Shown in pieces: positions 395 through 59,255 of a stretch of 64,000 nucleotides of DNA (positions are counted from its first letter, which is position 1; every line of letters starts with the position of its first letter). Source of the DNA: Trichoplax adhaerens (Eukaryota > Animalia > Placozoa); contig NW_002060958.1 of NCBI RefSeq assembly GCF_000150275.1, positions 690,272 to 754,271 on the forward strand, read 5' to 3'. A program made the position numbers and the translations under genes. The notes below the pieces were generated by a model. The model made no database searches. It saw only the letters and a list, made by a program, of their open reading frames with translations, and was not told where the DNA came from.

Positions 395-502
395 AGTACT
401 GACTGATGTTATTTGGTTAACTAGTACTTTGATATTTGCAGGTGCACAATAAAGGATAAATTATAAATTATAAGGGCTAAAGTGATACTGAAAGGTACTT
501 AC

Positions 503-14479: not shown

Positions 14480-14558
14480 ATTGGTCGTTCCTATGACGAA
14501 TGATTGTGCGAACACAAAATATTTATCAAAGAGGTTCTGCCTTGCCAATTTATAAATA
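14480..14558 (+). promoter_or_regulatory. Candidate core promoter of the mosaic gene
   Basis: TATAAATA at 14551-14558, GCCAAT immediately upstream and an inverted CCAAT (ATTGG) at 14480-14484; about 190 bp before the ATG at 14742. Confidence 0.4.
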
Positions 14559-14741
14559 GCCAAACTCATCCGTATGATATATTAATTTAAGCTATTGCTA
14601 TCGTTTGTTGAGTCAAAAGCAAAATTTAAGATACAAAACTATAGTTAATACACAGTAAAATCGTTTATATCACCATAGCAGTAGATCTGACTTCAAAATA
14701 AAAATTTTATAAATTGCATTCCATAATCAGAAATTTCATAA

Positions 14742-22020: not shown

Positions 22021-22110
22021 AGTTGCTAAAGCCTTACTACAACGCGTAAGAAATATAATTTAAAAAAAATTACCCTAACTTAGATCAACTGCTTCTGTTC
22101 AAACCGTCGT

Positions 22111-22116
22111 AATAAA
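22111..22116 (+). terminator. Candidate polyadenylation signal
   Basis: AATAAA about 90 bp after the stop codon at 22020; weak evidence in AT-rich DNA. Confidence 0.35.
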
Positions 22117-24227: not shown

Positions 24228-25329
24228 TTAATCGTCAGAGATTTCATTTACGAACGTTTCCATTTGAACCACCTTCTTTTCGTAGATACTATTAATGTCG
24301 ACTTTTTGAGTACGAGTGAATGTAGAAGTTACACCAGTTTCTGGTCGGCGCTTAAATATTAATCGAATAACTTCTACACTGGTCAAAGTGTATAAATAAG
24401 GATTAATTGCTGAATTTAAAGGCAAAACAAACGTTGCAATAAATTGTAGTGCGACAGTATCTACTTGTCCATCTTTTAATAGCCCTGCTACGCTTATATA
24501 GTAATATGGTACCCATGTCACTAAATCAGACACCAAAATTAGAGCCAATCTTACGGCTAAAGCCTTATTATCAGTTGTTGATGATTTTCGAATGTTTTTA
24601 CTGCTTTCTTTGACAGCGAAAAATATACGAACATACAGTATAATCATAATGATCCACGCCATAAATGTCATTGCTAAATAGGAGATCATCCAAATTTTAA
24701 AGTAAAAATTTTGGTAATTATTAGGCATGCACATACTACTGTACTTATAAATTCTTAAATAGCCTGGTTGTTGTATACTAAATAACACTGGCACAGCTGA
24801 GAAAATGATACTAAATGACCATAATACTCCTAATGCAATCTTGGCCCGTCCAACCGTCATTCTTTTAGTCGAGAAAGGATATACGATACAAATGTATCTA
24901 TCAGTGCTGATAATAATCATTATAAAAACCGATGTTAAACTTGATAATGTTACAAAAAAGCAAGCAATAAGACAAGCTGGATGCGATAGCCATGTTTCCG
25001 ATTTGATTCCATAATCACCACGAGTAAACATTAAATCAGCAATGGCAATGATCATTAAATAGAGACTCATAATTAAATCGGATACCGCTAGATTGCTAAC
25101 CAAAAAAGTAGGAACACTTTTTCTTTTTCTCTTGCTTAGGTGGTAGTTCTGAATCAGAACTAAAACATTACCAAGAAGAGCTAGACCACCAACAATCCAA
25201 ATAAATGTTTGTAAAGTGATGTGTGCCAGTAATCGATAGCATGAGGACAGAGTATCAGAATACATGCTTGGTTGACAAATTCTCACTTTTGCAGGAACCA
25301 TGCAGCAGAGATATTCTCGCTCTGTTATA
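24228..25329 (-). CDS. Terminal exon: hinge plus 7TM domain of the LRR-GPCR
   Basis: Acceptor AG at 25330-25331 (minus strand). Hinge reads ITEREYLCCMVPAKVRICQPSMYSDTLSSCYRLL. LGR-type motifs follow: TM2 SNLAVSDLIMSLYLMIIAIAD, TM3 STDRY, TM6 LILVSDLVTWVP, TM7 NSAINPYLY. Contains the 357-aa ORF of the track. Confidence 0.95.
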
Positions 25330-28300
25330 CTTAAATAATATTAAATTAACTGCAATTAGAATACCACTACCTAGTAACTATAGCAAATAAGTATTTGGAA
25401 ATATATGCTCCTGATAATAATTCGAAATATAAAGCTAAGGGTGTTCCTTAAGCTTTTTTAATTCTGAATCATTATCAGTTTTGCACAATAAGTGCCCATA
25501 AAAGGATATACATGTTATCGGATACATTTAAGTATTTACCGTGTCTGAACTACGGATAGCAATTTTTATAAGTTTACTTACACTGTCAAAAGCAAGGGTG
25601 GTCCATAAAACGATACAGGAGTAAGGTAGGCAAGATGATTACCTAATGCATTTCTAATATCATACGTAATAGTAACAAGTCGTAAGACAAGCTGACTATT
25701 AGATTTTATCTGATATAAATTATAGGCTTACTAAAACAGTACAATCTATAAGGTGAATATAGATAAAGCAGATTCAATAACGGACAGTTTATGAATCATT
25801 GCTGCCTTAACTCACATTATCTTCAATTCAATAAGCCCTTTAAAACACCTGCTTGTGAGTTTATCAATCTGATTATTTCTAATATCCCTTTACGAAAGAG
25901 CATCCGTTAATACGATGTGTTAAAGAATAGATAAATAAATGCACATTGACACTGTATCGACGTTACAGTCTAGCATAAGTGCAGTTTCTTATTTCTTAAT
26001 TTTTGGCTATGTACTTACAAGATCTGAAGAGATGGAAAATAATTTCCCAAACGCTGTTCACAGATATTTGAAATGTTATTATGAGATATATTCCTAAAAT
26101 TATTTGTAGGCTAGCGTAAGTTTATGATACATATTATAGGAGTCCTTATTCTAGTGTCTTAACCTTTTTCTAAGTAATCTTTTATTTAGCATTTGACATT
26201 GCAAACTTGCTAAGCAGGCTTTATATTATTTATTTTCAAAATTACAACATCTTGTTTCTATAATCTAGCCAATACTCGATATAGTACATTTCAGTCTTTA
26301 CTTACAGAGTAGTAATTACTTGATATTGCACAGCTTTTGAAAACGTTAAATTTTGTAATGCATTTCCAGATAATTGTCTGATGTATACCAGAGTGATATA
26401 AACAGAATAATGCTTAAAGATTAATAAAATTTATCGAGTAAGCTCTCTGCAATTTGATAATTGAAAGATCATAAGATTGGAATAAGAGTTAAAACCTTCA
26501 GTCGGTAACGCAAATTCACACATACTATAAAAATACGAGTATATCTTACAGATTTTCAAGACTATCCCGATAAGTCTCTGCTAGATCAGTGATATCAATG
26601 GTTTCCAGTTGATTATAACTAATATCTCTGAAAATTAATAACGATTATTAGACGTTAAAATAGCTATCATTAATTTAAACTTATAATCTAGCCAAAAATA
26701 GATACGACGATAGCATATGCTGTACGTATTTCAACAGCGTACATTTCTAAAACGCATTAGATAAGGCTTACTATACTTACATAACTTTTACCATTCTAAA
26801 AAGGCGAAATATCTTTTCCGGAATACGAGAAATATTACAGCTGCTTATTTTTCTAAAGTATTTATCAATTTCAACAATGTAATTGCTAATCTGATACATT
26901 TTAAATGGTAGTTTATTCAATTAAAATTAAATATAAGCAATTTCCAATGAAACTGAAATTTATTTCACTTTTGTAAAGTTTTCTGATAGTACAAGATGTA
27001 AGCGTTTATTTCAGGAAATTGATAAACATTTAGATTAGCTAATTTCTTTTTGTTTTAGAATAATCAATCTGAAAAAATTGTCAGCTACGCTAGTTGTTAT
27101 TATAAACAAAAAACATGATAATTCTGGCTATTTTGTGTAATTGCGCTTTCATTATTTATTATAAGTTAACAATCTACTAGGCCGTAAGAAATAAGTTTAG
27201 ATAGGATAATTGTATGATTTGTAGAAGCTAAAATTCTTCGGTATTACTATATGTCGTTAAAATTCACGTAGAGCATAATTATTAAAGAATGTTTGAGGGT
27301 ATTCGCTAGATTCTACTGTATAAATGCTAATATTCACGCTTCATAATATCAAGGTAAATAAAGTATTTAAATGTAATCACTTATTTGCAGGTTTATGATT
27401 AAGTACGAGATAAGCTAAGATGAGTAGCAATTCTCTATATTAACAAGTACTTGGAAATCTGATTGTAGAATAAACATTTAAAAACTTATTTTCTTATTGC
27501 ATGAAGGCACTGAAGTAGATAAGATTATAAATTAAATAAAAGCAATTTTAGTGGTAACAATTATAGTAATATCGAGATTCTGTGGATACCTGATTGTGTT
27601 AAAATAAATTCGCTAAGTTTCCATAATACTGCTAAGCTACTTCTGTACTTATAACGACTGTTCATAATAAATAACATTTTCATTTTGAACGATCATAAAT
27701 TCTTAGTTTAAGTACCAGAATTTCTTATCGTTGTATCAGTTGCGCATATTTGATAAGATATTAGATCAAAAACTTACACTGATAGTAAGAATGGGGCAAT
27801 ACCTTTCCAAAGTACTGCCATAATTCGTGACAAACTTATTGGATTATAGCTTAAATCTCTAGACAAAAATTGATAAATTTGTAACAATTAGCGCAAATCT
27901 ACGATTTAGGATTACCATAGATGATATAATTAATCCTTGACTGACAAGTAGCTGTGCTGTTGTAGCGAAAGTATCTCGCAATTATTCTATCTAATCTCAG
28001 GCAGAAATATAATTTAATGAATGCTTTATTACAAAGTTTAAGACTAGCTCATCTCGACGGTTCTTAAATAAATTTTGTTTAACTTTTTCGCGACAACAAA
28101 GTTATCTACAATCAAATCCGTATCATCAACAAAAGACTTATCCTCCACTAGATTACCGAAATATTTTACACTACCAATCGATCTGGATAAAACATCAATA
28201 TTTTTCTATAAATATTTAATAGCGCATGCTGAGTACCATCATAATTACAGTACACGGAGCCACCTAGATCTGGTTACCATACTTGACTTAGTGGCTAATA

Positions 28301-31300
28301 TATGTTAGTAATCAGCAATTTTTAATATATTAATTAACAACATCTATTATTAGCATCACGATAATGTGCATTCATGGAAATTTAACTACAATAAATATTG
28401 CTATCAAAATAATTTAGTATGTATAGTTGCAGTAAAATAATATCTTATGTTACTTATGCGATGTTTTTGGTAAAGGATTCTTCATATGCACGCGTAAGGT
28501 ATATTATAAAGACTACATCAAAAAATTCTCTTACTTACATGCTCACGATGTTATTATTCCTCCTGATCAAACTTGTAATGTTATTTCCTGCCAAAGATCT
28601 AACTCATATTGAAAAAGAATGTATATTAACTAAGTCTATAGTTATTACTAATAATTTTCTTTAGACAATGAACATATTGTAACATTTCTATAATCGACCA
28701 ATAATCTTCATACATTCTCTGGATGCTGTTTAATTTATTCAGGACTTGATTGTTCAGGTCAATTCCATTACTTATCAGATTGTTATAACTCAAATCGCTA
28801 ATATTTTTCAGTTGACAAGTAATATCATCACGTCGTTAGTGTTTAAAATCTTAGACCATTTTATGGCTAGAATTTATATGAAATTAGACTTACATAGAGT
28901 TTAAATTGAAAAATAAATCATTACAGTTATCATTAATCGCGGTAATGTTATTTTTGGCAATGGATCTATAACAAAATTTTAAAAATTCTATTATCAGGAA
29001 AGTTACTTTTTAAGAAAGGCAATCATTTTTCAATAAATAAATACATCCAGATTCCCCTATAATACCACTATCAATGTTTATCATACTCTTATAGCGAAGT
29101 AAAGAATTCTAAACCATTATTTCTCTTATAATGCTTAATATATACGTTGATTCATTATGCAATAGGTAATTTCAATATAATTTGGGTATGACTTTATCTA
29201 AAGAGATGTATATTATACTGTAAGTGACTGACGACAAGAGGACCGCCAGTATTTTAAGTCTTAATATACTAGACATAGTATTTCAAGACTGTAAAAGCTC
29301 AATTTAACATCTTATTAAGATAAACCGGATAATTATACTTTAACTCTTTGTTACGGAGCTTGATGCTCCTCCGTATAATTAATGGTCAATTTACGATAGT
29401 AGAATAACTGTAATGATATACTGTCGTGTGATTAAAAGTATTATTAGGGATAGTCGTGTTGTAGGCTACAATCCTCAATTGTTGATTGATTATTATTATT
29501 GTTATATAATTAATCATTATTTATTTATGTCGAAGTAGGCAATAGAACTAATGGTGAGATTTTACCATAAATTTGTGATAAATAATTGAACTTGCTAATT
29601 AATATTAATTAGTAACAAGTATTAATTAGCATTCGGTTTAGTCTATAGTAAGCCTGTATTGCACATTACATAATTTAATGTGAAAGATTAGCATCGGGTT
29701 ATTTGCGTGACATATAAAATTGTATGTAAGCTTGATTATTAATTTTTAATCTTAGTTCCACTGAGGCTAAGGTATAGTACACTAGCACTAACGTAAATGG
29801 GCTAGTAATAAATATATTTATTAACCTAAACCTATCGTTTGACTCGATTATTATATTATAGGAATGAGTTTGTTTTCTGTTACTGAAGATCTCCAGAGTT
29901 AGTCAGAGAACCATATGAATAGATAGACTAGTTTAGGTACGACTACGAAAGTTGTTTTGTGACACTCTTATAAGAAAGACATTCAGTATAATCCTATATT
30001 TGGCTGTTAGATACGTTCTTGGCTGGAGAATTACAGTCTTACAATAAAAATAATATAAGTTTGCTGTCTCATCCTAATAGCCACCCTACTGTACTAATAC
30101 AATTAGCTGAAATCATCCCACATAATAATAACCAAGTATAAATTAGAAATATTTGAAAATCCTCAAGTTTAATAGTATTTCTGTTATATTTTGATAATTT
30201 TATTTGAAGTAAATGTGCATGAATAAGTGCTATAATGGATAGATACAACTTGATTACTAGAGTTAACCAAAACATAGATAATTACAATACTTACAAACTC
30301 TGAACAAATGGCAATCCGTCACACGATAGATTTTTTATGCTGTTTTGACTGAGATCACTAGCGACATAAATTAAAGAAATCAAATAAATGGCGTTATCAA
30401 CACCTTTCAAGTTGTTAATAGTATTACAGGAAGCTAGCAAGGGCAAACATATAAAAAGTAATTAAGTCTTTACATCACTGATATTTTTGAATCTTTCAAG
30501 TAGCCGATGGAAGTAAATTGATTTTCGCTTAGTAGTCTATATAAAATAACTTGGACTTAGGAAGTACACTTTCTATTCGTATCACTGTAATTAGGATATA
30601 AAATGCCTATAATGACGTCTAAATATACAAATATAGCAGAATAAATGAGAAATTATAGATCACGCTGTTGAGGTTACTTACAAATTCGTTACCGATGATG
30701 AAGCGAATTTTAAACCTTCCCACGATTTTAGTTTATTTCCTCTTAGAAATCTATATTGATGAAAAGGTATAATTTGTACAATTATTAGAGCGAGCAATAA
30801 TAAATGTTATAAAGATTACGTAGCTGACTATAGTCTGAAGATAGTCATAGAAATTTTGATTGCTTATTACAGTGGAGCCTCAGACTAGTTTAAGATTGCA
30901 ATTGTAGGATTGTAAAAAAACAGATAAATGGAACGTTGATTGCATGATTGCGTAAGTGTCTAGAGTAGACGATAATTACAGGTACATATGCAGCAATTCT
31001 ATTGATATGTTATTTCAGTAGTTCAAGATAAAAATAGATTGCGCTAAATATGTGATTACTGTGAGATTTGTTTTGAATCTTCTAATTAGAAGCTCACATT
31101 AGAAATAAATCGGACGATACTGAATTTAGAACTGATCTACCGACTTAACTGGCAAGATACGATAATGCTACTAAAACATTGCTTTGTAAATAAATGCGCG
31201 TAAACGATGAGTTTAAATGTGAAAATTTAGATTATTTGATTGAAGCTTCACAGTTCTTGGTAGTTGTTGAATAAATTTAATTTATATAATATAAATAAGT

Positions 31301-34300
31301 TTACATAAAAACACATTTTCTTATTTTGAGAAGACGCCTTTACAAAGCAAAAATTAATAGAAGCATCTTATTGCTACGATAAAAATAGTTTTAATTACGA
31401 ATTTTCTGAGACATGCGCTAGAATAGCAGTTTAACAAAAAGGATATTATCAAGACTAGAGGATTGCTGTATTAAAAGAAGAATGGATAAAATGGATGTTA
31501 TACTTACTAAAGTATTTGTACGAAAGTAATTAAGGAATTATTGAAAATGTTATAAAGATAAATGAAACTAAGTGACTAATATTTTTTAACAACCTGAAAG
31601 ATGATTTAGGTATCATGTTACACAAAGCTACTTTCAAGCAGATTCATTTCTTCTTAATATTATCTAGTCGGCTTCTTTGTTATAGGATATTTAACAAATT
31701 GTATGCCTTTAGATAATAATTGCAATAGTGTTGGTTTAAGATATGTCGGATTAATGGTAGTAATCAAATTAAATCTGTATTATTTTGTCAAAATAATATC
31801 TTACTGTGACAAAGTGTAGCTCCATAAATTATAAATTAGGCAATAATAATTAATTAACCCGGTTGTTTACCATTTTGGTAGACAACCATGGAGCACTAGT
31901 ACTAGTACTGGTTGTTTACAATTATTATAAATGGAGCAATCAACAAAGATTTAATTATATGTAGCTAGATATAGTATCGTTTAATATAGGATTAGCTTAT
32001 GGGAGCGCACTGCTCCAATAATTAATTACTCATATTGGTGCTGAGGTCAGACTCGCTGATTGGCACCATAATTGGTTGTTTTTCATTAGTGTTTTTTACT
32101 ATCCAAGCTCATACTAAGTCATGTTAATTGTCTGGGAGTAACTCCCTATAGTAACGTATACAATTTGTAGAAGGAGCAATTTACTAGTATGCCCCACAAA
32201 TGAGTGAGGATGGTATAAAAGACCGAGCGAATTGCCATTCGCCGGCAGTAGTCGCTCCGGGCTAGGATAAACTAGTAGAGACTAGAAATCAGATGACTGG
32301 TGAATAAAAAGTGCTAGTGGTGTGAAAGAAACCTGAGTAGTTGTGTGACTGTGAGGAAAGAGTTAGTTTTCCCTTAGAAGAAGACTTCCAAGTTAGTGGA
32401 AGACATACACAATTACTATAGCACCTGACATAACCAAATCACAAGTGGGATTTGTGACAATTACTAAAAGATCAGACGACAATAATATGAACTATATTTA
32501 TCATATCATAAGATTAAATGCTAATAATGATTTCCACTTACAAAGTTTTTAATTCATTCAATTTTTGAAATACAGTTTCATTTATTGAAGTTATCTTGTT
32601 GTACGATAGACTTCTAAAAAGTAAACAGAACATTTTATGACGCAGAAATTTTATCGGATCTTAAATATGAATTTTTAAGATTAGCTAGTGCAGGTATAAT
32701 GTTTTATTCATGTTATAATGACTTACAGAACTGACAAAGTCGTACGAGCATTCATGAAATACGGCTCAGAAAGTAATTCAATATTGTTGTTGGGTAAGTA
32801 CCTTTAAATTTAAGAAAATACATATTCATATCTCTAGACCAAGATAATACATATTGCCATTTTGAATTAGTGTTATATTATAAAATTTAGCCAATTACAA
32901 CATCTACATTGAAAGATAAAGTATTGATTTGTAGTTTGATTATAAGCCAAGATCTGATTATAATGAATGAAGTCTTTCGTCGATATGGTAAATGCAAAGT
33001 AAGTGTAGCATAGTATCCTACGGCTGAATCACATCACTTAAATCTAGAATAACGCCGTTAAAACAGAATTTGTTGTTATTTTAAGTAATTTAATGGTATT
33101 AACTTCAGAACCATAAATTATAAAGAATATTTGTCTCCAGCAATTGCAATTTCTATTAGAGCAGAAACGAAATAATTCCGACAAACATCATTCGTACGAA
33201 CAATTACTAGCTTTTTAGCGTAATTGCTAGCAGATATAGACTCTTACTACTAAAACCTAACCGAAATATTATTCAGAGAAACACTTGGTTATGTATGCAT
33301 AGAATAATCAGTTTAAACAGAGAATGATGTTGAATTTGTAGATATCAACTTAGATATTTTTCAGCACTACAATGCCATACTATCCATATTACCACTCCGG
33401 TAAAATACGAGTTTTAATATTTATCTTCCTAGATTCACTAATTAAAGCAAAGCCTTTAAGTGCATTATCAATTTTATCAATGTTGCAAGAGCAAATAATC
33501 GCTTATTCTAATAAGTTTTAGGTTATATTAATATAACCTATAAGATCTCTAATTACGGGAAGCAACATCATCCTGGCTTAACAGTTCTAAATTTAAAGTA
33601 ATATTTTAATAATTGGTTTGTAATCTTTTCTACATTAAGTGTTTGTAATAGAGTGATTAAAAATCAATGATTACGATGCCTGTCGTTATAAGATAAGTTT
33701 TAAGGTATATCAGACACTGTCTGTTAGGTTTAGAAGATTAAACGCCAGAAAATAAGTAAACATACAAATGCTGCAAGTGAGTCAGATTGGCAAAATCTTC
33801 TGATTGTAAAAATTTGATATTATTTATTCCAAGGTACCTGTATGCAAAAGGAAACAAAATATTATCTATTATCCACCTTTTAGATAAAATACAATATTGA
33901 GTATTTATTCTGGGATACGTTATTTCAGCTCAGTTATTAATGATTTATTGTGATCGAAATATTTCATAATTTCACTAAGTAAAATCTTGGAAAGCGCTTT
34001 CAAAATCTTCCTTATAACTATAACATGGAAATTATGGTACTTTGTTGATAGATACGTAAGTGACAGAGGTACAAGCTTAAAGCCCTAAAACATAGTAAGG
34101 GCAGATCTTTCCTCTGACTTGGGGGAAAAAGGGAAAATACAATAATTAATAATTGATTATGGCATAATAATATATGATGTGCTGCTATCGAAAGATTTTT
34201 CGTCAAACGCTATAATTTTTTCGTAAAATGGAAGTAGAAATATAAAATATTCTCTGTTACATCTAAAGGATATGGTTCTATAATCAATTAGCGACTAATA

Positions 34301-37300
34301 ATTAAGGAGGAATAAACTAACTACGCTAGACGCATTTTTAGAAACTTAAGTGGCACAACTGGTAAAATGAACTCAAGTATTTTTGTTTCGATTATTTTAT
34401 AATTTTTTTAATATTATGTATCATAATTTTAGCTATAAATATGTTATGATTACGAACAGCTGTTGTAGCTTTACTAAAGGCCGTATAAATTTGAGCTCTT
34501 CTAATTGGTTACCGCCCATGTTCCTAGAATTATAAAATTGAAGACACGGTGATGCAATTTTGTCACAGCTCCTCTAAACGATTTGATATGGTCTATGGGC
34601 TATTCTTACTTCTAGTGTGTGATATAAATATGCTTACAAAGATTTCAATTCCACAAGTGAATCTAACGCTTTCTCGTTAATTGATACTAGTCTGTTGTTT
34701 CTGAAAGACCTATTAAAATTGTCAGGTAGCACATTTATGTCTAAGATATCAAAAACATGTTAAAGCCTGCAATCTAAACAACAGTTGTACTTCATATCTC
34801 ATTGTATCAATTTTGCTAGTGCATTTGTAATCTATACGAGTCAACATATTAGGTTTGTACATTTAGTGATTTTCACTATTCAACAGTGCCAATCTATGGA
34901 CACTTTCACATTTAAATTAACTTACAATCTTTTCATGTAGTTTGGATAACGTAATGTTTTAAAAAAATCTTTATCCAACGTTCTGTATCTGTTCCAATCT
35001 AAAAAGCTGGTAAATTTGTTGTTTTTTCAATTTGATATTGTTTTTATCTGATTTTGTGACCAGGTTTTAAATTCCTTTATTGCAAAATACTTACAGTGAT
35101 AATAAGGAGACAGTTTTAGAAAAGTTAAGAACATAGGGTTCTTCCAATGCGTTGTATGATACATTTCTAATACCATTAATGAATGTAAGCTTAATTAAAT
35201 TCAAAGTACTATATTAATATAACTTATCTATATAATAATTTTAATAATATGCTATTTTTGAAATAATCAAATATAATATCATGTGCTTCAACCAGTTCCA
35301 ATATTCGACGAATGAATATCTACTATCAGGCTTGCTCATGTAGTGGGATATAAAATAGCAAGGTATATAAACCAATGACTAGTAAACTTACAACATAGAG
35401 CAGTCATAAAAGTTTAAATCAGTTTGTGTTCGTATAAGATTGCTAGATAAATCGCTAAAGGAAATTATATAAAATAAATTTAGTGTTAGATTTTCAGTAA
35501 ACCTAACACAATTAATTCCTCAAGCTAGAAGTGTCCATGCACTGTAGTTCCAGTTTTATTTTGCATTGGGCAGAGATTAATAGCCAAGCTAATCATTTCT
35601 TAATGTTCAGAATTAGAATAAATAAAAAAGAGCTTACATCTTATCAATCTTCTGGGATCCTGAGATAAAGTTTTTGCCACCAAGTCGATGTATGTTGGTC
35701 TTCGACAAGCCCCTGTTGAAATTGAAATTATTATTGATAACATCAAGCAGCAGTCATGTCGATTAAGTATGGAATCCTAAATTCTAGCTTAAGTTCTTAA
35801 TTCACAGTTTTTAAAGTTAAATGATGCGTATAAAAATCTAATTTATTCGTTATAGTCAGACAATAAAATAGTATGCAAATATCACAAACCAGCTTCGTGG
35901 CAAGGATAACGTAAAACAAATCTCTAAATTACTATAGTCTTCCGGGATTCAGTATCCCTTAACTACCTCACAAGAATTTAGACGCCTTTGATTCTACGTT
36001 AAACTCAGCTAGACAATTGAGAACTGCTTTATTTAACTATCTGACGGGCTTATATACCCTTCTACAGCAGCTAACATTCACAAGTCATCTTATAAAAATA
36101 CTTAGGTGAGAACATCTACTAACTAGTTTTTCACAGTCGGACTACAATATATCCATTCACAGAATCATTTCAGTACACATTACAGCACAGCATTAAATTT
36201 ACTGTAACACATTTATAATTAGAGTAATTCCTATTGTAAGTAACTAGTTGTAATATAATATCACTATATTATATTAACCAAATTTAGATAGCTATATCTT
36301 CACGGTAGTTCGTACCGTGACACCAAAAAATAAAAGTTATAGTTCTAATTAATGATGGAGTTTATGGCCTTAGTACATTTAAGAAAGGTAAAGCAGCATA
36401 TTATATTTCCAATAGCAACTTAGACAGTAGTGTAAGGCACATTTTAATCCTACTTCCATAATAGAAAAATTTCGCAAACTTAATATATTATAGCAGGGTG
36501 CTCGACTGGTATAAATAAAGATTATCAGTCTTAATTAAGTTTATTCATTAGACTACAGTTAGAAATGTATTTGAATTTTCTATTGAGTATATTAATGCTA
36601 GATTTATTCGCTAAATTACGTATTGGTCATTTTTACTAAGATACATAAATCACAGCATTTTAATCGAATTTTTCAGAAAATTTATACGCGATGACACACA
36701 TATTTTCTAATGGAATCTTGATTATTTTTGATTCATTGTAGCTACGCTTATCAGCATGAAGGATAATGCAAAAAACATATTTATATGCTCGTCTGTTTAG
36801 CTTAAATATTGATAGAATATAGTATTAAAATGTAACTAAGCATTGCTGTGATAGCTGATGAATCGGGAACAACACGATAACTGGAAGAAAAGGGCCATTT
36901 AAAAGTGTGTATTTCTATCCCCCTTAAATACTATCAGTAAGGCGTAAAGACCTTCTAGTTTATATTCGCCTCTAAATAGAGTATAAAGATATAAATCTAC
37001 AAGATAGTATAATGAACATTATTTTAGAATTCTTCTTCAAGGTGTTTTATTATTTTAATAAGTATTCTAGCTTTAAAAATAACTTAATTTGGCTTAATTA
37101 CAGTAGGTTTTACCCTAGCATTATAACAAATAATAATCGCGACTCCTTTATTCGGGTTAGAACTTAAGCATATTCTTTAGAACAATTTTGATCAGAATAT
37201 CACGATTTCAGATTGTAATTCATGCAATATATTTAGTCAGTATCGTACAAATTCTCTAATTATGATAAAAACTTTCAGCCAATTTTGATTAGAAAATATA

Positions 37301-46300: not shown

Positions 46301-49300
46301 CTAGTTTATGAAACAGTTAGGACTTACAAATTTCTTAAGTTCCACAGGCAAGCAAATGAACTTTCGTTAATAACTGGCAATCTATTTGATTTTAGGATTC
46401 TAGCAATTTATATATATAACTGCAAGATTAGTCTTTTTAAAGACATGCAGTGATAGTAACTATTATTTGTAATATGCAGCATGGAGGAAAACTTTAAAAC
46501 GCCATTTATTTTAAAACTGCAAGTAGTCAAAATTGTAACCATAAGAGTTTTAGCAATGATACTTTTCGCAGAAATTTTCACTTAGGTAGAATTCAGCCGG
46601 GCAGTCTAAATAACGATAGCAACTGCTAGACACTTTTTTTAATAATAAATGCCTCGATAGCAAACTCACAGCGTAACCAGAATTGGCATACCACAAAACG
46701 AACGTTCCGGAATGCTTTCAAGCCTATTTTCCGACAAATCTCTGTAATTAAAGTATTTTAGAGTTTCGATTACGGATAGAATTGTGTGTCACGATTATTT
46801 AAATTCTCATTAAATGTGAAGAGCGCTACTGCTAGAAATACAAAGTACAGGGCTTAACTACTATCACAAAATAAACTTTAGAATGGAAAATAAGATGTGA
46901 TTATATACCGTTGTAATAACAGTTACAGTAAGCGCATTAAATATTACTTTATTATAGTTTTATGATAGTGAATTATATTCTCCTGCATGAATATTATAGT
47001 GCCATATAGTTTATTACGAATTTATTAATAGGACAAGCGTATATGGATAAGTCCGTTAGCTGTGCAAGCTCACATTTTCTGTACTAGATTCCGATCCAGT
47101 AAGGACATATTGGTCTAATTAGATTACTGGCTTACTCTGATATTTGTTACTTAACCATACCGGCAACGAAAATTCTGTTTTAATGTGTGTTTTATATTTA
47201 GTAAAAGAACTTTGAAGTCAGTAGATTCTTATGGACTTTTACTTCATTTTTATTTGTCATGCAGCTAATTTATGACACATGCGCGTATGTAAAAAAGCAG
47301 GTAAGTATTAGTATATACTGCTTAGGAATCAAATTTCGAATAAAATTCTTTTATCCTAGAAGTTAGTATAAGTTATTAAAGTGATTTTGCTATCGCAAAA
47401 TTCGCTATGTGGTATAAATTAGGCAGTTTAGGCCACAAATTTAGTTACGCTAATAATTCGATAAATTTAAATAAAAAATGGTGTAGTGTGTACTACTGGA
47501 CAAAAAATGTTTGCAACAGGTTGTTATGACCGAGTAATAGTCTCCTGTTACTACTATTAGCTTCCCTACTGTACTACTACAATTAGCTGCAATCATCTCA
47601 AAGGTGGATAAGTTATTTTATTAAGTTAATTTGCTCCATAAGCGAAAGCAGGGCACGGTAATTTTAGATAGGAACTTACAAATAGGAAAGTCGACTCAGG
47701 CAGAAGAAAGCACCAGCTGGGATTGATGTTAATGGATTTCGCCTTAAAAAGCTGTAAAATAAAAGAGGTAGTTAAATGAATTACTTGCTATACAATGATA
47801 TATCATGGCGCAATATAAGTATTATATACGTTATTAACAATATTATAATCTATGGAAAGGAATTTCGATCCATTAACTTAAGGCATTTGCTATTCTAAAA
47901 TATAATTCAATCTATAAATCTTACATTTGCCGTAGATATCTTGTTCCACAAAAAGCATTGGGCTGAATTTGAGTAATGTCATTACTGCTGAAACTTCTGC
48001 AATCATATTTTATCGAAAATATTATTTGCAACAACGCCTAAGTATTCAATGGAAATACTGTAGACGCAATTTCTGAAACACAAAATTACTGTTTAACATT
48101 AATAAAGATTCGCTAGTTTAGGATCGATTAAAACAAGCCATTATCGCTGTCGTTAACATTCGATTCGCCTGTAACCGGCATTATAACTTTAATTAGATGA
48201 AATATTCTGTACCATTTGAAGTAAAGCGTTCATAGGACTTTGTTACATTAAACAATAACTATCATCGTTTTCCGTAGGATAATTGGACTTGTGTCACTGG
48301 TTGAAAACATTAAGTTAAAGCTTCAACCGATCTCATTATAGGATTATGTATTGTAATGTGATAAAGTGCTTCTCAAAAATAAGATAAGATCTACAGTTTT
48401 TCGTAAATTTTCTTGTATATTTGTCTTACTACTACCTGGGTCTTCTCTTAGACTAATTGTGGATTATATTTGGATTATCTCTTATACAATCTTACAATCT
48501 TAAATGCAATATATCTATTTTCGTATAATCTGCAATCTAACTATCTAAGTCTTAGATATATTTGAGACTGTACTACATCTAAATATCGCCTATACTTCAG
48601 TCCAGAAAATTTATTCACATTTTAAAATGTAAATAAGTGTTACGAGCTAGGAATAGCCCTATCTAGCAACAAGAATTGAGAGAGCGATCTCTATCCTTTA
48701 CTACTGTTATTTGGAATACCAGACAATTGGTATTGTAAGGCAGATAGGGTTAACATAGAGAGACTTTCAAGTCTACTAGAAAATCACAATCTAATTTACT
48801 GTCGACGGACTCTCTATTTATATAGGTTTCGGACCTAAAACCAGTTTAGCTACGCAAGTCACCCCCGTCTATTAGAAATTAACCAAATTAATACCCTAAA
48901 TGGATTCTATCTGTACAGATTAGATACAGTCTAATCCTTTTAAATTTACTATAACAGTATTAAAATAAGCAATACTTGTTAATAGTTTAACAGATACACA
49001 TAACACTATCCTACTAAGAAATTTCCTCTGAACTTAGGAATTGTACTTTGAACCTTAACAACCTTGGAGGTGATAGGTATAATCCAGTTTAGCTAGTTGA
49101 AAATTATTATTTTAGTCGATGTAATCCTAAATTAAGGATATGAAGTGCTAACCACTAAAATTACAATTAGGAAGACCGTAAAACATTTTTGAGATATGAG
49201 CATTTATAGAACGTAACATAGAAATAAAGTATACGTTACAAAGATTACTTTCCTGACAATTAGTTATAAATTGTTGTCCACTATTATTACTCTTATGTTT

Positions 49301-52300
49301 ATCAAGTAGGATAATTTTGACTCTTTAGTAGATGAAACCGCTGCAACGCCTCTAATTTAGATCAAATTATCGTATTATAAACTATTAATTTTATATATTT
49401 AAGTCTATTTCACTACCGTATTCAAAAAATAACTATCTAATTTAGAAGCAGCATANATAATATACTTTGTGAAGGCTACTATCGAGGATGNNNNNNNNNN
49501 NNNNNNNNNNNNNNNNNNNNNNNNNNNNNNNNNNNNNNNNNNNNNNNNNNNNNNNNNNNNNNNNNNNNNNNNNNNNNNNNNNNNNNNNNNNCCAAAATTC
49601 GATTCAATATCCAGCAAAGTAACCCCAACCTCATAATAACGGCAAATTAAGATTGTTTTGACTACAATATTATCACAATATTTAAATAACGTCCCTAGCA
49701 AATAGCTGTCCTTAAACTTGTCATACGTAAATGGAAGTGTAAAACTTATAAGAGTAAGTCATTGTAACGATTTTCATTTCTCACTACAGAAAAATTATTC
49801 CGTCATCAAATTAGTGATTACTGCTAGTATTAAATAGATATTTTGCATAGTATCACATTGTCATGGTACGAACTACCGTGAAGAAATAGCTATCTAAATT
49901 TGGTTAATATAATATAGTGATAATATATTACAACTAGTTACTTACAAAAGGAATTACTCTAATTATAAATGTGTTACAGTAAATTTAATGCTGTGCTGTA
50001 ATGTGCTCTGAAATTATTCTGTGAATGGATATATTGTAATCCGACTGTGAAAAACTAGTTAGGAGATGTTCTCAACTAAGTATTTTTATAAGAGGACTCG
50101 TGAATGTTAGCTGCTGTAGAAGGGTATATAAGCCCGTTCGATAATTGAATAAAGTAGTTCTCAATTGTCTAGTTGAGTTTAACGTAGAATCAAAGGCGTC
50201 TAAATTCTTGTGAGTAGGAATACTGAATCCGCAGATTTTAAGAGTTTTAGAGATTTGTTTTACGTTATCCTTGTCACGAAGCTGGTTTGTGGCATACATA
50301 AACCAGACTAATACAACTAAAAATACTGGAATTTAAACTCATTAATTAATTGCACTTGTAACATAAAAGCATAAATATCTTTGAACGAGTAACTTAAATC
50401 TAGCCTAATCCGATATAATAGTTGGATATTGACTGGATGAAAAAAAAGTTATTTTAAATTTTATTCTTGGTAATACATTTCATTAAACCATTCTTTATAG
50501 AATACCACTAAATTTTTTTATCTTTATTCAATAATGCTAGTACTGTGATCTGAAGCTAATTAAATCTTTACGAAAATTATCGATTTCTACACATCTGCTT
50601 TAGTGAAGTTGTATCGGCAAACTTACAATACACGAAGATTCTTAAGACATCCCAGCTGACCTACATGAATCATTTTAAGAAAATTTCCATACCCATTTCT
50701 AAAAGGAATGCGTGAAGTAAATTTAGCTTCTTCTAAATGATTCAAATATCATCATATAGATTCTAAATTGTATAGACAAGATAATAGATAAAGAATATTA
50801 TTGCAGTAAGTTAATATAACAATACATCGTTTGCAGATTCCATAATTTGCAAAGCGAGTTCTTTTCTATCGACGATATTTTATTAAAACCAAAATGCCTG
50901 ATGTAATAAAATAATTTTTAATAACAGTTCAGATATAAGTAGTTCACGAGTTGCACACAATACAATTTAGAATAATTTCTTAAGGTAATGTCGAAATTTA
51001 TTTAATTTTACTATCAATCACTCTAATACATGTGAAATTACAAAATAAAACATGAAGTAATAGCTTTCATGTTATAAACGATTTTTAAATAAGGAATAAA
51101 CTTACAATGTCTTAATTTTTAAGACTCGATTGAATGTGTTCATAGTAATGTTGGATAACGAGTTTCGATAAAGATTTCTGTATTTTTTATTGAAATCGTA
51201 ATAAAACAAATTAAATGATAAGACTATCTGCTACAATACGCCACAAACATCAATATTGTTAGATATGAAATTTCATTTGTTGCTCTTAAATTACACGCTA
51301 AAAATGTCTACACTAAGAGCAACTTTGATACGAAACATAAATACAATAGTAAAGCTATCATTTTCTTACAGATTTGAAAGTCTTGACAAGCCTCTAAATG
51401 CATTAGGCTCAATATGGCTAATCCGATTATCGCTCAATACTCTATGAAATATCGTAATATTTGAATATATTCAGAATATTTTAAGAATAACATGACTATT
51501 ATTCTATCAACAGAACCAGTAGATTTGTTTTGTAATTACCAAAAACAGCTTCGCAACAAAACGAAGTAATTTACAATCAATAAGTCAATTCCTTGAACCA
51601 CGTATCAAGGAACGATATCTGCACTTTCAGTAACACTTTTACTCTACTAGCAGACTACATAAAGACTTAGACGCCTCTTATTTTACGTTAAACACTTAGT
51701 TTGAGAATTAACTTTATGATACGATATACTGCATTTATATACTCTTCCTCAATAGTTCATGTGTCGTAGTTAGTACGATTAACTTTAGAATCATTCCCTA
51801 AATTAGGCATTAATTTTAGCTACTGCTCTCTAATGCATACAACAGTATTTACGAACATAGACATCTGATGATTAACACAGAATAGTCAGATTACGATATG
51901 TCCTATCACGGAATATTTCCACGATAATTTACAATCTACCTTAAGTAAGTTACAATTATAGTGATTCGAACTGTAAGTAGATAATTCGCATTCCGCAAAG
52001 TAACTATTAATTTCAGTATATATATATATATATATATATATGTCACAGTCATAAAAACCAGAGCTGAATTAAAACACAGTATATTCAAATTAGAATTTAA
52101 CTAAATAAGGATAGGCTAACAAAATTATCCTAACACAGATATTTATACTCTAATACAGTATATAACACTGCCACAGTAATTAATTGAATCTCTGATTGTA
52201 CTGGCACTTTATTATCATAGCCTACATAAATTTTAAATTGCCATTCTAAAACGGTATAATATTATTGTGCTAGATATTGCTTTATTGCATTTACAAGCAT

Positions 52301-55300
52301 ACAGTCTTAAGTCTTTATCTAAAATCATTTTTAGGAATGGTTATCATAAATATAATGTATATCTTATGGAAATACGCGTATTCAAAATAGAATGTACATC
52401 CAAATAAAATTTAAAAATTTAATTTTAATGATCATATACTGTAGCAATAATATATGGTATAAGCAACGTAGTTTAAGAGTTATATATCGTAGTTTAGTTT
52501 TTGTAATATATATTGAAAATTATCTATCGAAATATAAAGCGCCGTACCAAGCATCCTAGAGTAGTGTACTACATTGTTTACAGGACTGAACTAGAGTAAT
52601 AACCAATTATCCCATACGTTTCTATAGGAGGTGTTTAATATTATATTATATTTTGTATTTACTACGTTATATCCCTTTCTGAATGATACATGAGCAGACA
52701 TAGAATAAATTTTTATCTAAACTTTTCTTAACATTTATTCAGATTTGCCCTTTATCAAATTCAGTTTTATATTCTGCACTGTTTTAATTTATGTCGAAGA
52801 AGTTGTGTAGCTCTGTCGCTTACAACGTAGCTATTAGTTTAAATAGAAACGCATTCTATTAACTTTACGGTTTAGTGTAGTGATAGATTAAGCAACTGTA
52901 TGTAGTTCGTGAAACTTAAGTGGATTCTGTAATTACTAATTATTTTACTGCTAAGTCTATATACCATGTTTATAATCAAATTTATTATTTTAAATTATTT
53001 GAAAGACGTGACTTACAGATAAATGAGCATCCTTAAGCAGTAAAACATATATTCGTGTATGCTGTGGAGCGAATTGTTATCTAATAGTCTGAAAATAATC
53101 AAATTTTACGTTTATAGCATAATGATGAAAGTGTGTTCAGATTAGTAAATTTTCTTCCCATACAAACTGAACAATGATGGAAGATGGCATAAAGCATTTG
53201 CTTCAATGGTCCTTATCAAGTTACCCTTTAGCGAACTATGAATGTAAAAATTTTATAACTTCTTCAACAATGGCTAAATGAAGCGATCAAACAGTGACTA
53301 AATACTTTTCGTAGTATTTGTAGCCATAATCCACACAGTAACATTCTACCTGTTTTACACACATTCAGACTATACTTCAGACCATTTACAATCTATTACG
53401 GTAACTACTACAGTACTGACATAGACATTTTATCTTCTACGCAAAGTACGATGAACTAGTCATATCCTTATCCTAATACCCATATGAGTTTCATATTTAT
53501 TTTATTCGTAGTATCAATAGTTACTCAATACTCTACTGTATATTTATCTGTATTTTAACTTAGAATCTTTAATTACGATCAACAGTTACAAGCTGTTAAA
53601 ATAAAGCTTATGATAAACATAGAAAGCTACAATACCGTAAATCAAAATAAACAAGGCAAATAAGCTATAATGAAATACCGGTACTTATATGCGTTACAAA
53701 CATTTTTCACTAAACAGTAACTTCGGACTATTTAATAGTTTTTCTAAAGCCTTTCAAGTATTTATATTCGGCTAGATTAGAGCTATCTTTAGGTTATTTT
53801 TAAATAATGATTTCAAAGGTTCTAATTTTTTGCGAATTTTGGAATTTCGTGATCAGATATGTCGTAAACATTGTCAAATTCTTTTATAATGTAGAAAAGT
53901 TATTAAAAGTTTTGCGTGTATTTTACGCATTGAAATTTTCTTACAGAGTTCGAAGGTTTCTAAGGCATGCGAAATCGTTTTTCTTTATAATATTTAATCG
54001 ATTTTTATCTAAATAGCTAATGATAAATGCTATAATCAATAATTATACAAGATTAATTACATAAAATTCAACTAATTTTCATATTATTTAGTTAAATCTT
54101 TTAGCGAATAGCATCCAAAAAAAGCTAATACTTACAGATATCTCAGAGAAGGTAAAGTACAAAACGCCATCGGAGTAATACTTGAAATTTTATCATTCAT
54201 CAGCTTTCTGTAATTAAAAGTATAGCATTATTTAAGATAATTTCTAATTGAATAAATAACTTTAATGTTTGATAGCGTAGCAATTTAGTGTTAACTGTGT
54301 GCAGGAAGTAAATTGGAAAACATTACTTACTGCAGTAATAAAGTGCAATACATGCAAGTTCGGAGTACGAGGTAAAGGTAGCTTAAAGGATTTTAGGTAA
54401 TACTAATAATGACTTAATAAAGACTACGTAATAGCTTTTTCAGTTGATTACAAAAGGAGGAAATATATTTATTGAGTAATCTGTGCCTTAATTTGAAATC
54501 TATAGCAAGATCTTTTAAATTTCAATCGAATTTAAATTGGTAAGTACGGGATTCTAAACTTTAGGATAACGTTAAGGCTTGAATACAAAATTAGTGTTAC
54601 TTTTCAATTTTTGTGCAATTGAAGCTATCTTGCAAATTTGAGCCCTAAAAAGTTGTACATCATCTGCTAATAGTATTTTTTCATGGTTTCCTTATTTAAT
54701 GTTAATGAAAATATTGACGTTAATCATTTTAAAAATTTAAGTATAGCGTGATAAAGCGAAGCGAAATTGGTTTAGAGCGTTCAATTGTGCTTAAGTTTTA
54801 CTTACAAAGTTACGAGCTTCGGATATCTAGTAATCGTCCCGTTTGAAATTGTCATAATATTACCGAATTTAATATCCCTAGAAGATTATGAAGTAAAATT
54901 CAGTAACTATTAAGTTAATTGACACAGGCGCTACAATTTACGAAAACTTGAATGAATAACTATAGTAGAGATAATCGCCGTATTTTAAAATGGAGGAAAG
55001 TCTAGAGTTCTACTTCTACTAGAGCTAGTGCCAATAAAAATAGACTAGGAGAATATTCATATCTAATTGCTAAAGTATTCGAGGCATGATTTCTGTCACT
55101 CTCAAGGTTCGAAATCTACTAGCTGGAAATTTGCGTCATTAATACAGTGAAAATATCTTATAAATCGCAAGTACCTTAACAACACCCTTAACTGTATACT
55201 TCATTTTATTATCGCTAGCTGTTTGTATGATTTGGGCGTTTTACTAAATCATGTAAAAAGTTAACGAACTTAAATTGGGTAATTGTGTCGTATAATGTAG

Positions 55301-56476
55301 CCTTCCTAGGTATTTCTACGATATTACTTTATATATAAAATTCTCAGGTATTTAGCAAATGGATATTTTTCGTTATAAGGATTTGTAAAGGAAGTTTTGG
55401 GCGTAACAGATACTGTGAAAATCTTATTTCTCAAACAATGCTATGCTTTGTTCTATCCATAAGCTCACTAAATCGAAGGTTCAGACTAAACACGGAAGAC
55501 TACATCTTTGGCTAATAATTTCTTAGCCTGTTGAATGATATATGTTCGATTTACATTATTATAATTACTTTCTAACGTTGCATTTAGTGATGTTACAAGA
55601 GCTAACTAAATAGCTGCAATTTTTACCATCATACTTTGAAAATATGCAGCTACCATTAGCTGATAGTACTGCACTCCGTAGATATTACATAGATTTACTA
55701 TAACCTCCAGCATAACTTATTTACATTATCAAAAACAAACATTTTGACTGATAGTTTTTAATTAATTTTATCTCACTTCATAATGATAAAGTATTTTATT
55801 GAATAGTATATTGATTATTATACCAATTAATTTTAAATGCAGAACGTATCGTTTTCGCTTAATTATATATGAGAGCATTTATTAAATGTTACAATTTTTT
55901 TGTAAAAGCTAGCCTACATTGAAGTGATATCCCTCGTTGCGTTGGCTAAATCAGGAATTTGAGTCAGATCGTAACTACGACAAAAAATTGTACTAGTACT
56001 GCAAGAACAGTATTTCGCACATGGATAAGCCATTCCTTTATTCATCGAACAAATTATTCGTTAATATGTTGGTACACATTTTATAAAACGCTGGTAATGT
56101 GCTGAAGAATTTAGAAGATTTATATACTCTTCATATAGCTTACTGTATATTTATTTACGTAGAAGTTAGTGTTTATTCTAGCTAGTTGTAATCACGAATA
56201 AATAGCAGTTTGGTCACATATTATTATTGGTGCTAATTTATGTTTCTTAAATGAGTACTCTTCTATCTTCTGTAAAGTATACTCATTATTAAGCAAGCAC
56301 TCTGATAAAATAATACTGATTTGATACCAGCAATTTTAACCAAATTTAAAATATCTTGTCATATCAAACTGCTGATAATATCTGCATGACCAATTTACTT
56401 TCTCACCTGTTGATGCAGCTATAAGAATCCATAGTATCAAAGCAGCTAAGATATTCTTTTGGCATCCAAAGTACAT
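24228..56476 (-). CDS. Giant LRR-containing rhodopsin-family GPCR (LGR-like, RXFP/GRL101-type hinge, no LDLa); 48 exons, 45 LRRs, ~1506 aa
   Basis: Exons in transcription order, all GT-AG and in frame. Signal 56407-56476 (MYFGCQKNILAALILWILIAASTG). LRRNT 55918-56035 (CAKYCSCSTSTIFCRSYDLTQIP). LRR exons: 54806-54877, 54136-54207, 53945-54016, 53164-53235, 53017-53088, 51370-51441, 51106-51177, 50826-50897, 50627-50698, 47925-47996, 47680-47751, 46670-46741, 46328-46399, 45402-45473, 45243-45314, 43785-43856, 43454-43525, 42411-42482, 42155-42226, 41855-41920, 39324-39395, 38571-38642, 37948-38019, 35638-35712, 35392-35454, 35095-35166, 34926-35006, 34638-34709, 34458-34523, 33766-33837, 32727-32801, 32542-32613, 30682-30750, 30474-30536, 30295-30357, 28894-28965, 28714-28797, 28539-28598, 27778-27858, 26781-26852, 26550-26627, 26306-26377, 26019-26093, 25816-25887, 25582-25653. 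Hinge+7TM 24228-25329. Each LRR exon is 60-84 nt (mostly 72), phase 2-2, and reads roughly xLxxNxIxxI...F..L..L..L. Caveat: assembly gap at 49491-49591. Confidence 0.85.
29349..29964. mobile_element. Family R6 solo-LTR-like element (intronic)
   Basis: TGTTAC...GTGACA with a perfect CTCTT duplication; the same start (tgttacggagcttg) recurs at 40624. Confidence 0.75.
31805..32459. mobile_element. Solo-LTR-like element, GC-richer than its flanks
   Basis: TGTGAC...GTGACA, flanks CTTAC/ATTAC (4/5 match); single copy in the window. Confidence 0.6.
33430..33501 (-). pseudogene. Decayed LRR exon with a dead donor
   Basis: 72 nt, AG acceptor, donor GGAAGA (from GTAAGA); with one frameshift it reads ICSCNIDKIDNALKGFALISE. 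Confidence 0.5.
35880..36322 (+). mobile_element. Family R3 (short form) solo-LTR-like element
   Basis: TATCAC...GTGACA, flanks GCAAA/CCAAA; near-identical inverted copy at 49859-50294. Confidence 0.8.
38357..38421 (-). pseudogene. Decayed LRR exon
   Basis: AG/GT flanks kept, 65 nt; reads N*S*INSLEYIDLIFPANLKS(L). Confidence 0.55.
39629..39691 (-). pseudogene. Decayed LRR exon
   Basis: Reads NQVRTLSDTSLAFEGLLNLK* with stops on both sides and no phase-2 acceptor. Confidence 0.55.
40404..40990. mobile_element. Partial R5 copy followed by an R6-like element starting at 40624 (possibly nested)
   Basis: 40404-40620 resembles 9550-9760; 40624 starts like 29349. Right end not resolved. Confidence 0.5.
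44600..44882 (+). repeat. Degraded 3' fragment of R1
   Basis: gtgtaaaataagg, gcaactttg and aaattttggaactatgcgatcg match the R1 3' half. Confidence 0.5.
45648..46005. mobile_element. Truncated R2 copy
   Basis: Nearly identical to 51540-51893; begins TGTCACAAAACAGCTT. Confidence 0.75.
48638..49200. mobile_element. Family R4 repeat, LTR-like start
   Basis: Starts TGTTAC; diverged colinear copy at about 63322-63890 (aatagcccta, gtactttgaacctta, aattaaggat). No target-site duplication resolved. Confidence 0.55.
49491..49591. other. Assembly gap
   Basis: Run of 101 N, plus a single N at 49456, inside an intron of the LRR-GPCR. Confidence 0.99.
49859..50294 (-). mobile_element. Family R3 (short form), inverted copy
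   Basis: TGTCAT...GTGGCA, flanks CACAT/TACAT; reverse complement of 35880-36322. Confidence 0.8.
51537..52175. mobile_element. Family R2 solo-LTR-like element
   Basis: Perfect GTAAT flanking duplication, ends CCACA; contains a (TA)n tract. Confidence 0.75.
52017..52040. repeat. (TA)12 microsatellite
   Basis: Read directly from the sequence. Confidence 0.95.
53385..53863. repeat. Rearranged old R1 fragments (inverted 5' half, then forward 3' end)
   Basis: caaagtacgatgaac matches 146-160; ttggaatttcgtgatcagatat matches 4781-4802. Confidence 0.55.
55918..56476 (-). CDS. Signal-peptide exon (56407-56476) and LRRNT exon (55918-56035) of the LRR-GPCR
   Basis: ATG at 56476, hydrophobic core LAALILWILIAA, phase-1 donor gtgaga. 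The next 118-nt exon carries a CxxxCxCxxxxxxC cap and a phase-2 donor. Confidence 0.85.
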
Positions 56477-58674: not shown

Positions 58675-59255
58675 TGTAATGTAAGTTAGTATTGTTATTG
58701 TAGACTGTTCGCCATGTTTAGTATAATGTACGGTAGCGTAACTTCTATATTTATTCTAAGATATATTTGGTAGCCATAACTAAAGACTGTAGTGGTATAG
58801 ACTCTATGCTAGAGTACAGATGACTATATGCAGTAATATATGTTGACTTATTAATAAGGCTATAGGTAAAAATAGAACTGTAAATCATATATTAGGATAT
58901 AGTTCATTCATTGTACTTTGGCTGGTGTGAATAATGTCTACATAAATACTGTACTCGTATCCATATCGGATTAATGATGATCCGCAGTAGAATAGTGTTA
59001 CTAAGAATAATTTAACTATGTATAAAATAAGGTAAGTGTATAAAATAAGGTAAAAGGTTGCCGTGCGGATTGCAGCTGCGAATGCTACGAAAAGTATAAA
59101 AACATGCAACTTTAGATTATTCTGTTAGATCGTTGTAGAAGTCTTTAGTAGTAGTATTCGGCTAGAGTAGAGCTGTGTGTAGTTAATCTTTGTATAAGAT
59201 TCAATAAAACCCTTTTTTTCTAAAATTTGGAATTTCGTCTTCGGTATATATCACA
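58675..59255 (+). mobile_element. Family R1 solo-LTR-like element
   Basis: TGTAAT...ATCACA, flanks TTTAG/TCTAG. Confidence 0.8.

Follow-up and report, generated by a model that had tools for sequence, protein, structure and literature searches.

The stretch of Trichoplax adhaerens DNA considered here (the window; 64,000 nt, positions 690,272 to 754,271 of contig NW_002060958.1, assembly GCF_000150275.1, forward strand) is about 30% G+C and contains one long open reading frame, at 24228-25301 on the minus strand. This frame lies within the last exon of TRIADDRAFT_60578, a gene encoding a leucine-rich repeat-containing G-protein-coupled receptor (LGR). Read on the minus strand from 56476 to 24228 (numbering, here and below, from the first letter of the window), the gene forms a chain of 48 exons that totals 4521 nt and encodes 1506 amino acids without an internal stop. 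In order, the product consists of a signal-peptide-like start, a putative LRRNT cap, 45 exons of leucine-rich repeat (LRR), and a single exon for the hinge and the seven-transmembrane (7TM) domain. Very probably, TRIADDRAFT_60578 is one intact, transcribed, and constitutively spliced gene, specific to placozoans, whose full form carries 45 LRRs.

The exon chain was recovered by a scan that was blind to the coordinates of the initial annotation, which had described 45 LRR exons of phase 2-2 feeding a single-exon 7TM. The scan collected intervals running from AG to GT, with a length divisible by 3 and an open frame at offset 1; a position matrix and, after it, an LRR profile served to score the candidates. 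The scan returned exactly 45 LRR exons, all on the minus strand and between 54877 and 25582; the number of exons and the product length of 1506 residues agree with the initial description, which is upheld. The count also bears out the statement that type A, B, and C LGRs have far shorter ectodomains. The same scan gave no LRR exon anywhere on the other strand of the window, nor in the 17 kb that separate this gene from the next (7000-24000), and a search of the introns for extra exons of 45-99 nt with GT or GC donors yielded nothing convincing.

All LRR exons are of phase 2-2; 31 of the 45 are 72 nt long, and the remainder range from 60 to 84 nt. AG is present at 47 of 47 acceptors and GT at every donor, with the sequence GTAAGT at 27 of the 45 LRR donors. 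The codons split by the junctions always specify L, I, V, or M (34 L, 9 I, 2 V, and 1 M), and 41 of the 45 LRR exons have Asn at repeat position 5. The interior of the array contains no second LRRNT cap, signal peptide, or start, and no stop or terminal exon.

The 5' end of the gene consists of two exons that precede the repeats. Exon 1 (56407-56476) begins with an ATG at 56476, encodes a hydrophobic start of 23 codons plus 1 nt, and ends in phase 1 at the donor CAG/GTGAGA. Exon 2 (55918-56035), which passes from phase 1 to phase 2, encodes the putative LRRNT cap with the pattern C-x3-C-x-C-x6-C. Its Pfam LRRNT score falls just under the cut-off (E 3.2e-5; 23.9 bits versus 25.8), and inspection of the sequence shows the arrangement of cysteines and the hydrophobic start. 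A signature of the LDLa domain (D.SDE-type) is absent from every frame of the window, and exons 1 and 2 contain the putative signal peptide and LRRNT only.

The first part of the array is distinguished by its cysteines. After LRR1 (72 nt, 54806-54877), the exons from LRR2 to LRR17 (43454-54207), each of 72 nt, are of two types in strict alternation, with Cys at F+1 (type A, F-C) or at F+2 (type B, F-x-C), and form eight pairs. These are LRR2 (54136-54207, which has a Pfam LRR_8 match below threshold) and LRR3 (53945-54016); LRR4 (53164-53235) and LRR5 (53017-53088); LRR6 (51370-51441) and LRR7 (51106-51177); LRR8 (50826-50897) and LRR9 (50627-50698); LRR10 (47925-47996) and LRR11 (47680-47751); LRR12 (46670-46741) and LRR13 (46328-46399); LRR14 (45402-45473) and LRR15 (45243-45314); and LRR16 (43785-43856) and LRR17 (43454-43525), the last exon with this kind of Cys. 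Introns from A to B are short (75-270 nt), and those from B to A are long (208-2630 nt). In the third pair (51441 at the A position and 51177 at the B position), both cysteines are gone together, and they are missing from their usual places in the third pair of two paralogs as well. The joint loss and the spacing of the introns fit a disulfide bond linking neighbouring repeats, and duplication in units of two exons.

The 28 repeats from LRR18 to LRR45 are more irregular than the first 17. Exons of 72 nt at LRR18 (42411-42482) and LRR19 (42155-42226) are followed by LRR20 (66 nt, 41855-41920) and, past an intron of 2459 nt, by three more 72-nt exons, LRR21 (39324-39395), LRR22 (38571-38642), and LRR23 (37948-38019). 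After a further long intron (2235 nt) come LRR24 (75 nt, 35638-35712), LRR25 (63 nt, 35392-35454), LRR26 (72 nt, 35095-35166), LRR27 (81 nt, 34926-35006), LRR28 (72 nt, 34638-34709), LRR29 (66 nt, 34458-34523, with the weak donor GTTCGT), LRR30 (72 nt, 33766-33837), LRR31 (75 nt, 32727-32801), and LRR32 (72 nt, 32542-32613). The array then continues through LRR33 (69 nt, 30682-30750), LRR34 (63 nt, 30474-30536), LRR35 (63 nt, 30295-30357), LRR36 (72 nt, 28894-28965), LRR37 (84 nt, 28714-28797), LRR38 (28539-28598, at 60 nt the shortest exon), and LRR39 (81 nt, 27778-27858). It is completed by LRR40 (72 nt, 26781-26852), LRR41 (78 nt, 26550-26627), LRR42 (72 nt, 26306-26377), LRR43 (75 nt, 26019-26093), LRR44 (72 nt, 25816-25887), and LRR45 (72 nt, 25582-25653), the last repeat before the hinge.

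The last exon (24228-25329) encodes a short cysteine hinge (CC...C.P...C), a 7TM domain with DRY and NPxxY motifs, the C-terminal tail, and the stop. The domain is of the rhodopsin type (Pfam 7tm_1, E 1.1e-33; 117 bits versus a cut-off of 30.5). Its nearest solved chain is RXFP1 (7tmw, E 2.7e-34), followed by TSHR, LHCGR, and FSHR (E 1e-28 to 5e-26), with other classes of G-protein-coupled receptor (GPCR) at about 1e-14. In RXFP1, the hinge is matched by residues 376-405; C, R.C.P, D..SS, and LLA are shared. The closest relatives of this gene are Trichoplax proteins throughout, and the relatives in Trichoplax sp. H2 carry the NCBI names 'GRL101-like' or 'Relaxin receptor 2'.

Public models of the gene are much shorter. 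XP_002116618.1 (TRIADDRAFT_60578; P0001), a 505-residue ab initio model from T. adhaerens (H1), matches the 7TM exon at 100% identity, and the H2 ortholog model, P0156, has 550 residues, starts at the same place, and is likewise cut short. XP_002116618.1 begins at an ATG within the intron ahead of LRR40, lacks a signal peptide, and omits LRR44. P0156 has LRR43 as a 96-nt version that is out of register (26015-26110) and LRR45 with an extended acceptor (25582-25695). Both models contain LRR40 and join LRR45 to the 7TM exon, and only 5-6 LRRs are present in the NCBI models of this gene.

Evidence on splicing comes from the assembled contigs of one low-depth run recorded as RNA (X5), aligned to window positions 24801-30800, and rare isoforms are beyond its reach. 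Three other runs (X1-X3), labelled 'RNA?', cover the introns evenly; they are thus genomic DNA and uninformative on expression. All eight spliced joints of X5 have CT..AC when read on the plus strand and hence GT..AG in the direction of the gene. Four of them connect LRR35 to LRR36, LRR37, LRR38, and LRR39 in turn (28965/30295, 28797/28894, 28598/28714, and 27858/28539), and four connect LRR40 to LRR41, LRR42, LRR43, and LRR44 (26627/26781, 26377/26550, 26093/26306, and 25887/26019). Two loose contig ends match the next upstream exon exactly and add the junctions LRR33 to LRR34 and LRR34 to LRR35; a contig on LRR33 has a 9-letter loose end matching LRR34, which is itself represented in the RNA only by such ends at both of its neighbours. 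All 10 junctions are therefore between consecutive exons, and both the 60-nt LRR38 and LRR44 are included. Six of the exons spliced in the RNA, LRR34 to LRR39, are missing from all public models. In addition, the RNA joints contradict the boundaries of LRR43 in P0156 and the omission of LRR44 in XP_002116618.1; the LRR45 acceptor lies outside these joints.

A high-copy repeat (29345-30072) sits in the intron that separates LRR35 from LRR36, and the depth of the DNA runs rises 10- to 25-fold over it. The contigs there differ in their joints, several of which carry extra letters; these represent variant copies of the repeat or structural polymorphism.

Comparison of H1 with H2 provides a separate view of the exons. 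The H2 locus, reached through P0156, was aligned to window positions 36910-23025 at 98.9% identity. Over 12.7 kb of the gene, exons differ at 8 of 2683 positions (0.30%) and introns at 98 of 10000 (0.98%; Fisher p 3e-4), and the changes in coding sequence are 7 synonymous and 1 non-synonymous. H2 keeps all of the compared splice sites and has no stop, and each exon from LRR24 to LRR32 is intact in it. Sixteen of the compared exons are missing from every public model. The low divergence of the exons, the kept splice sites, and the absence of stops indicate that these 16 are under purifying selection as coding sequence.

Paralogs place the repeats in a common order. The 7TM exon has 76 matches in this genome. 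One belongs to the nearest downstream paralog, a second giant LGR gene in tandem, TRIADDRAFT_60575 (H2 ortholog P0002), which is also on the minus strand, occupies window positions 1-6788, and runs on to contig position 673847. Its signal/LRRNT exon is at about 6788-6636, its Cys-type exons of 72 nt include those at 5508, 5268, 3319, 3161, 2675, 1232, and 574, and its 7TM is 16 kb outside the low end of the window; at the strict threshold of our finder it has 38 LRR exons. In this gene and in the closest paralog (61% identical in the 7TM), Cys-type pairs are followed by irregular repeats and then by the 7TM, the same order as in TRIADDRAFT_60578, and the annotated H2 protein P0002 has all three in one chain. 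Collinearity with the tandem paralog holds exon by exon (Spearman 0.83, p 1e-12); LRR24 to LRR27 and LRR29 to LRR31 are among the exons collinear with P0002. For 32 of the 45 LRR exons, the best match is an exon of a paralog rather than a sister exon of the same gene. Together, the shared order, the collinearity, and the lack of an internal cap, start, or terminal exon argue for one gene in which each repeat has its own conserved place.

Several observations weigh against this reading or limit its detail. The placement of exon 1, and that of the exon 2 acceptor, comes from the sequence. RNA supports 10 of the 47 junctions and none upstream of LRR33 (30750), and among the X5 contigs on 24801-30800 the junctions LRR39 to LRR40, LRR44 to LRR45, and LRR45 to the 7TM exon were not seen. 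One contig reads from LRR39 unspliced for 205 nt (27573-27777), into an immediate stop, and ends in 9 letters unlike LRR40; this contig is either an unspliced precursor or an assembly chimera. Both public models start in what is an intron of the present model, so that neither offers independent backing for the gene's 5' two thirds.

A further limit concerns the count of repeats. The longest intron of the gene (2630 nt, between LRR9 and LRR10) contains an assembly gap of 101 N (49491-49591), with one more N at 49456. The exon scan found no fragment of an LRR exon in either flank. The exon before the gap is of type B and the exon after it of type A, so the gap hides either nothing or a whole A/B pair; thus, the count is 45, possibly 47, since one further pair could lie there. 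As the exons are symmetric, the reading frame is safe whatever the gap holds. None of the other contigs of the assembly spans it, matches being the window itself and dispersed repeats only. The immediate flanks are unique, and dispersed repeats begin just past them: two families, at 49102-49260 and 49855-49950, have at least 40 copies each in the genome (85-90% and 97-99% identity), and probably account for the break in the assembly.

The first alternative to be weighed is that two genes have been joined, with the upstream Cys-type exons coding for an LRR protein of their own, secreted or anchored, and the 7TM fed by the downstream repeats only. The character of the repeats does shift after LRR17, the introns at LRR20/LRR21 and LRR23/LRR24 are long, the RNA contigs on 24801-30800 are silent upstream of LRR33, and neither the public models nor the H2 annotation, which has no gene in the 10 kb upstream of P0156, call anything in that region. 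However, the array lacks a terminal exon, a stop, a second signal peptide, and a second LRRNT; with every exon of phase 2-2, a separate upstream transcript could not end its frame. The order of Cys-type repeats, irregular repeats, and 7TM in two paralogs, which P0002 joins in one protein, also argues against a division, and we regard two genes as quite unlikely.

A second alternative, advanced by the initial annotation, is that of a combinatorial receptor, in which splicing would pass over varying sets of the 45 symmetric LRR exons and one locus would thereby provide many binding surfaces on one 7TM. The premise that any subset can be skipped in frame holds as arithmetic: the exons are of phase 2-2 and multiples of 3 in length, none of the 1081 forward pairings of donor and acceptor makes a stop at the joint, and the hydrophobic junction codon would usually be rebuilt. 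The omission of LRR44 from XP_002116618.1 might be taken as one such form, but LRR44 is present in the RNA. In vertebrate LH, FSH, and TSH receptor genes, each LRR is likewise encoded by one exon of about 72-75 nt in the same phase; thus, exon symmetry alone is not a sign of diversity. Symmetric exons of one LRR are a general structure of LGR genes; a literature search on intron phase in these genes yielded nothing usable for the LRR exons.

The remaining evidence goes against the repertoire itself. The RNA check called for by the initial annotation gave no junction between non-adjacent LRR exons among the 10 observed, with rare isoforms lying beyond the contigs of one run. Exons keep their positional identity across paralogs. 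Neither recent, near-identical exon duplicates nor repeated, selector-like elements beside the exons were found, the sole repeats being intronic copies that resemble transposons. The dozens of genes in the family (PMC9545775; 76 7TM matches) offer another route to variety. Exon mixing within this gene is therefore very unlikely.

The last alternative, that the gene is decaying, with part of the array reduced to dead pseudo-exons and a functional receptor as short as the 505-residue model, is extremely unlikely: it could draw on the irregular repeats (60-84 nt), the weak donors GTTCGT and GTATGA, and the contig that retains the intron after LRR39, but 45 of 45 exons are open with AG and GT sites, comparison of H1 with H2 shows purifying selection on the unannotated exons, whose splice sites are kept, LRR34 to LRR39, including the shortest exon, are spliced in the RNA from outside all public models, and the public start codon is intronic and gives a product without a signal peptide.

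Other features of the window lie in the introns or outside the gene. Two intronic pairs resemble mobile elements: one is a direct pair of 352 nt (45654-46004 and 51542-51893; 96-97% identity), and the other, of about 440 nt, is inverted (35883-36322 and 49859-50291; 95-98% identity). A gene on the plus strand (18454-20507), situated between the two LGR genes, encodes kringle (Pfam E 1e-19) and SRCR domains, and the H2 annotation has a kringle/SRCR model of 778 residues at the matching place. A small hydrophobic open reading frame borne by a repeat occurs in two copies on the minus strand (4474-4677 and 58885-59109).

The one-gene reading of TRIADDRAFT_60578 places it within a published family. 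T. adhaerens has 46 LGRs, of which 41 are specific to placozoans (Hauser, Koch and Grimmelikhuijzen 2022, PMC9545775). The latter carry their own kind of hinge and unusually many LRRs, as exemplified by Tadh-LGR-15 with 34 (PMC9545775). The present gene resembles them in species, in its LGR-type 7TM, its own hinge, its many LRRs, its lack of LDLa, and its dozens of paralogs, some in tandem; unlike Tadh-LGR-15, it has 45 LRRs. It belongs to the placozoan-specific LGR expansion, being of neither type A nor type B and having unusually many LRRs. The published list names these genes by CoGe TriadITZ identifiers only (Supplementary Table 2), and the present gene may or may not be one of the 46. The gene is a correctly extended member of the family published in 2022 and not a new kind of system.

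Comparison with other LGRs shows both kinship and distance. As in type C LGRs (RXFP1/RXFP2 and Lymnaea GRL101), the nearest 7TM is that of RXFP1 and the hinge has the motif C...R.C.P..D..SS..LLA; unlike them, with their LDLa and about 7-10 LRRs, this gene has no LDLa and 45 LRRs. Its 7TM is encoded by a single exon, in contrast to some bilaterian genes of the RXFP/LGR3 type, which have introns in TM2 and TM5 (PMC11863921). The genes for LHCGR, FSHR, and TSHR are similar in combining an LRR ectodomain with a 7TM in one large last exon, but those receptors have about 9-11 LRRs and the long hinge of type A, whereas here there are five times more repeats and the hinge is short.

Two systems of recognition invite comparison as well. 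Toll-like receptors and other long LRR ectodomains have about 19-25 LRRs. Like Toll-like receptors, the present product has a long array of typical 24-residue LRRs behind a putative LRRNT and is predicted to be a receptor of the cell surface; unlike them, it would signal through a 7TM rather than TIR and has about twice the repeats, and any link to immunity here is speculative. Kamm et al. (2019, PMC6321704) found no true Toll-like receptors in placozoans; LRR-GPCRs were not considered as recognition receptors in that study. With systems of the Dscam or VLR type, the gene shares the use of many small modular units to encode pieces of a binding surface. In contrast to those systems, its exons do not form clusters of near-identical, mutually exclusive alternatives, selector elements are absent, nothing points to rearrangement of the DNA, and the splicing seen in RNA is consecutive.

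A simple scheme for how such a receptor may work is that the exons are joined constitutively and in sequence to give a single long LRR solenoid. From the number of repeats, it is plausible that this product coils past one horseshoe. The solenoid would bind an extracellular ligand, and the signal, in the manner of other LGRs, would reach G proteins by way of the hinge and the 7TM. Variety in the binding surface would then come from the many paralogous genes and not from exon mixing inside one gene. Given the size of the family and its restriction to one lineage, our guess is that the ligand is somewhat more probably an outside cue (food, a microbe, or another placozoan) than an internal hormone. 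A broader but unlikely idea is that, in an animal lacking true Toll-like receptors, the long-LRR GPCRs, with TRIADDRAFT_60578 among them, take the part of pattern-recognition or chemosensory receptors; variety would come mainly from some 50-70 paralogs and, in addition, from low-level in-frame skipping of the symmetric exons that assembled contigs would not reveal.

The extended gene model bears directly on how this family is studied. The public models of 505 and 550 residues lack about 40 of the 45 repeats, the signal peptide, and the LRRNT cap; thus, counts of LRRs, trees, or clones based on them would use an incomplete protein. The conservation of repeat position among the paralogs suggests a fixed and very long binding scaffold, and TRIADDRAFT_60578 adds a well-documented case to the unexplained expansion of giant LGRs in placozoans.

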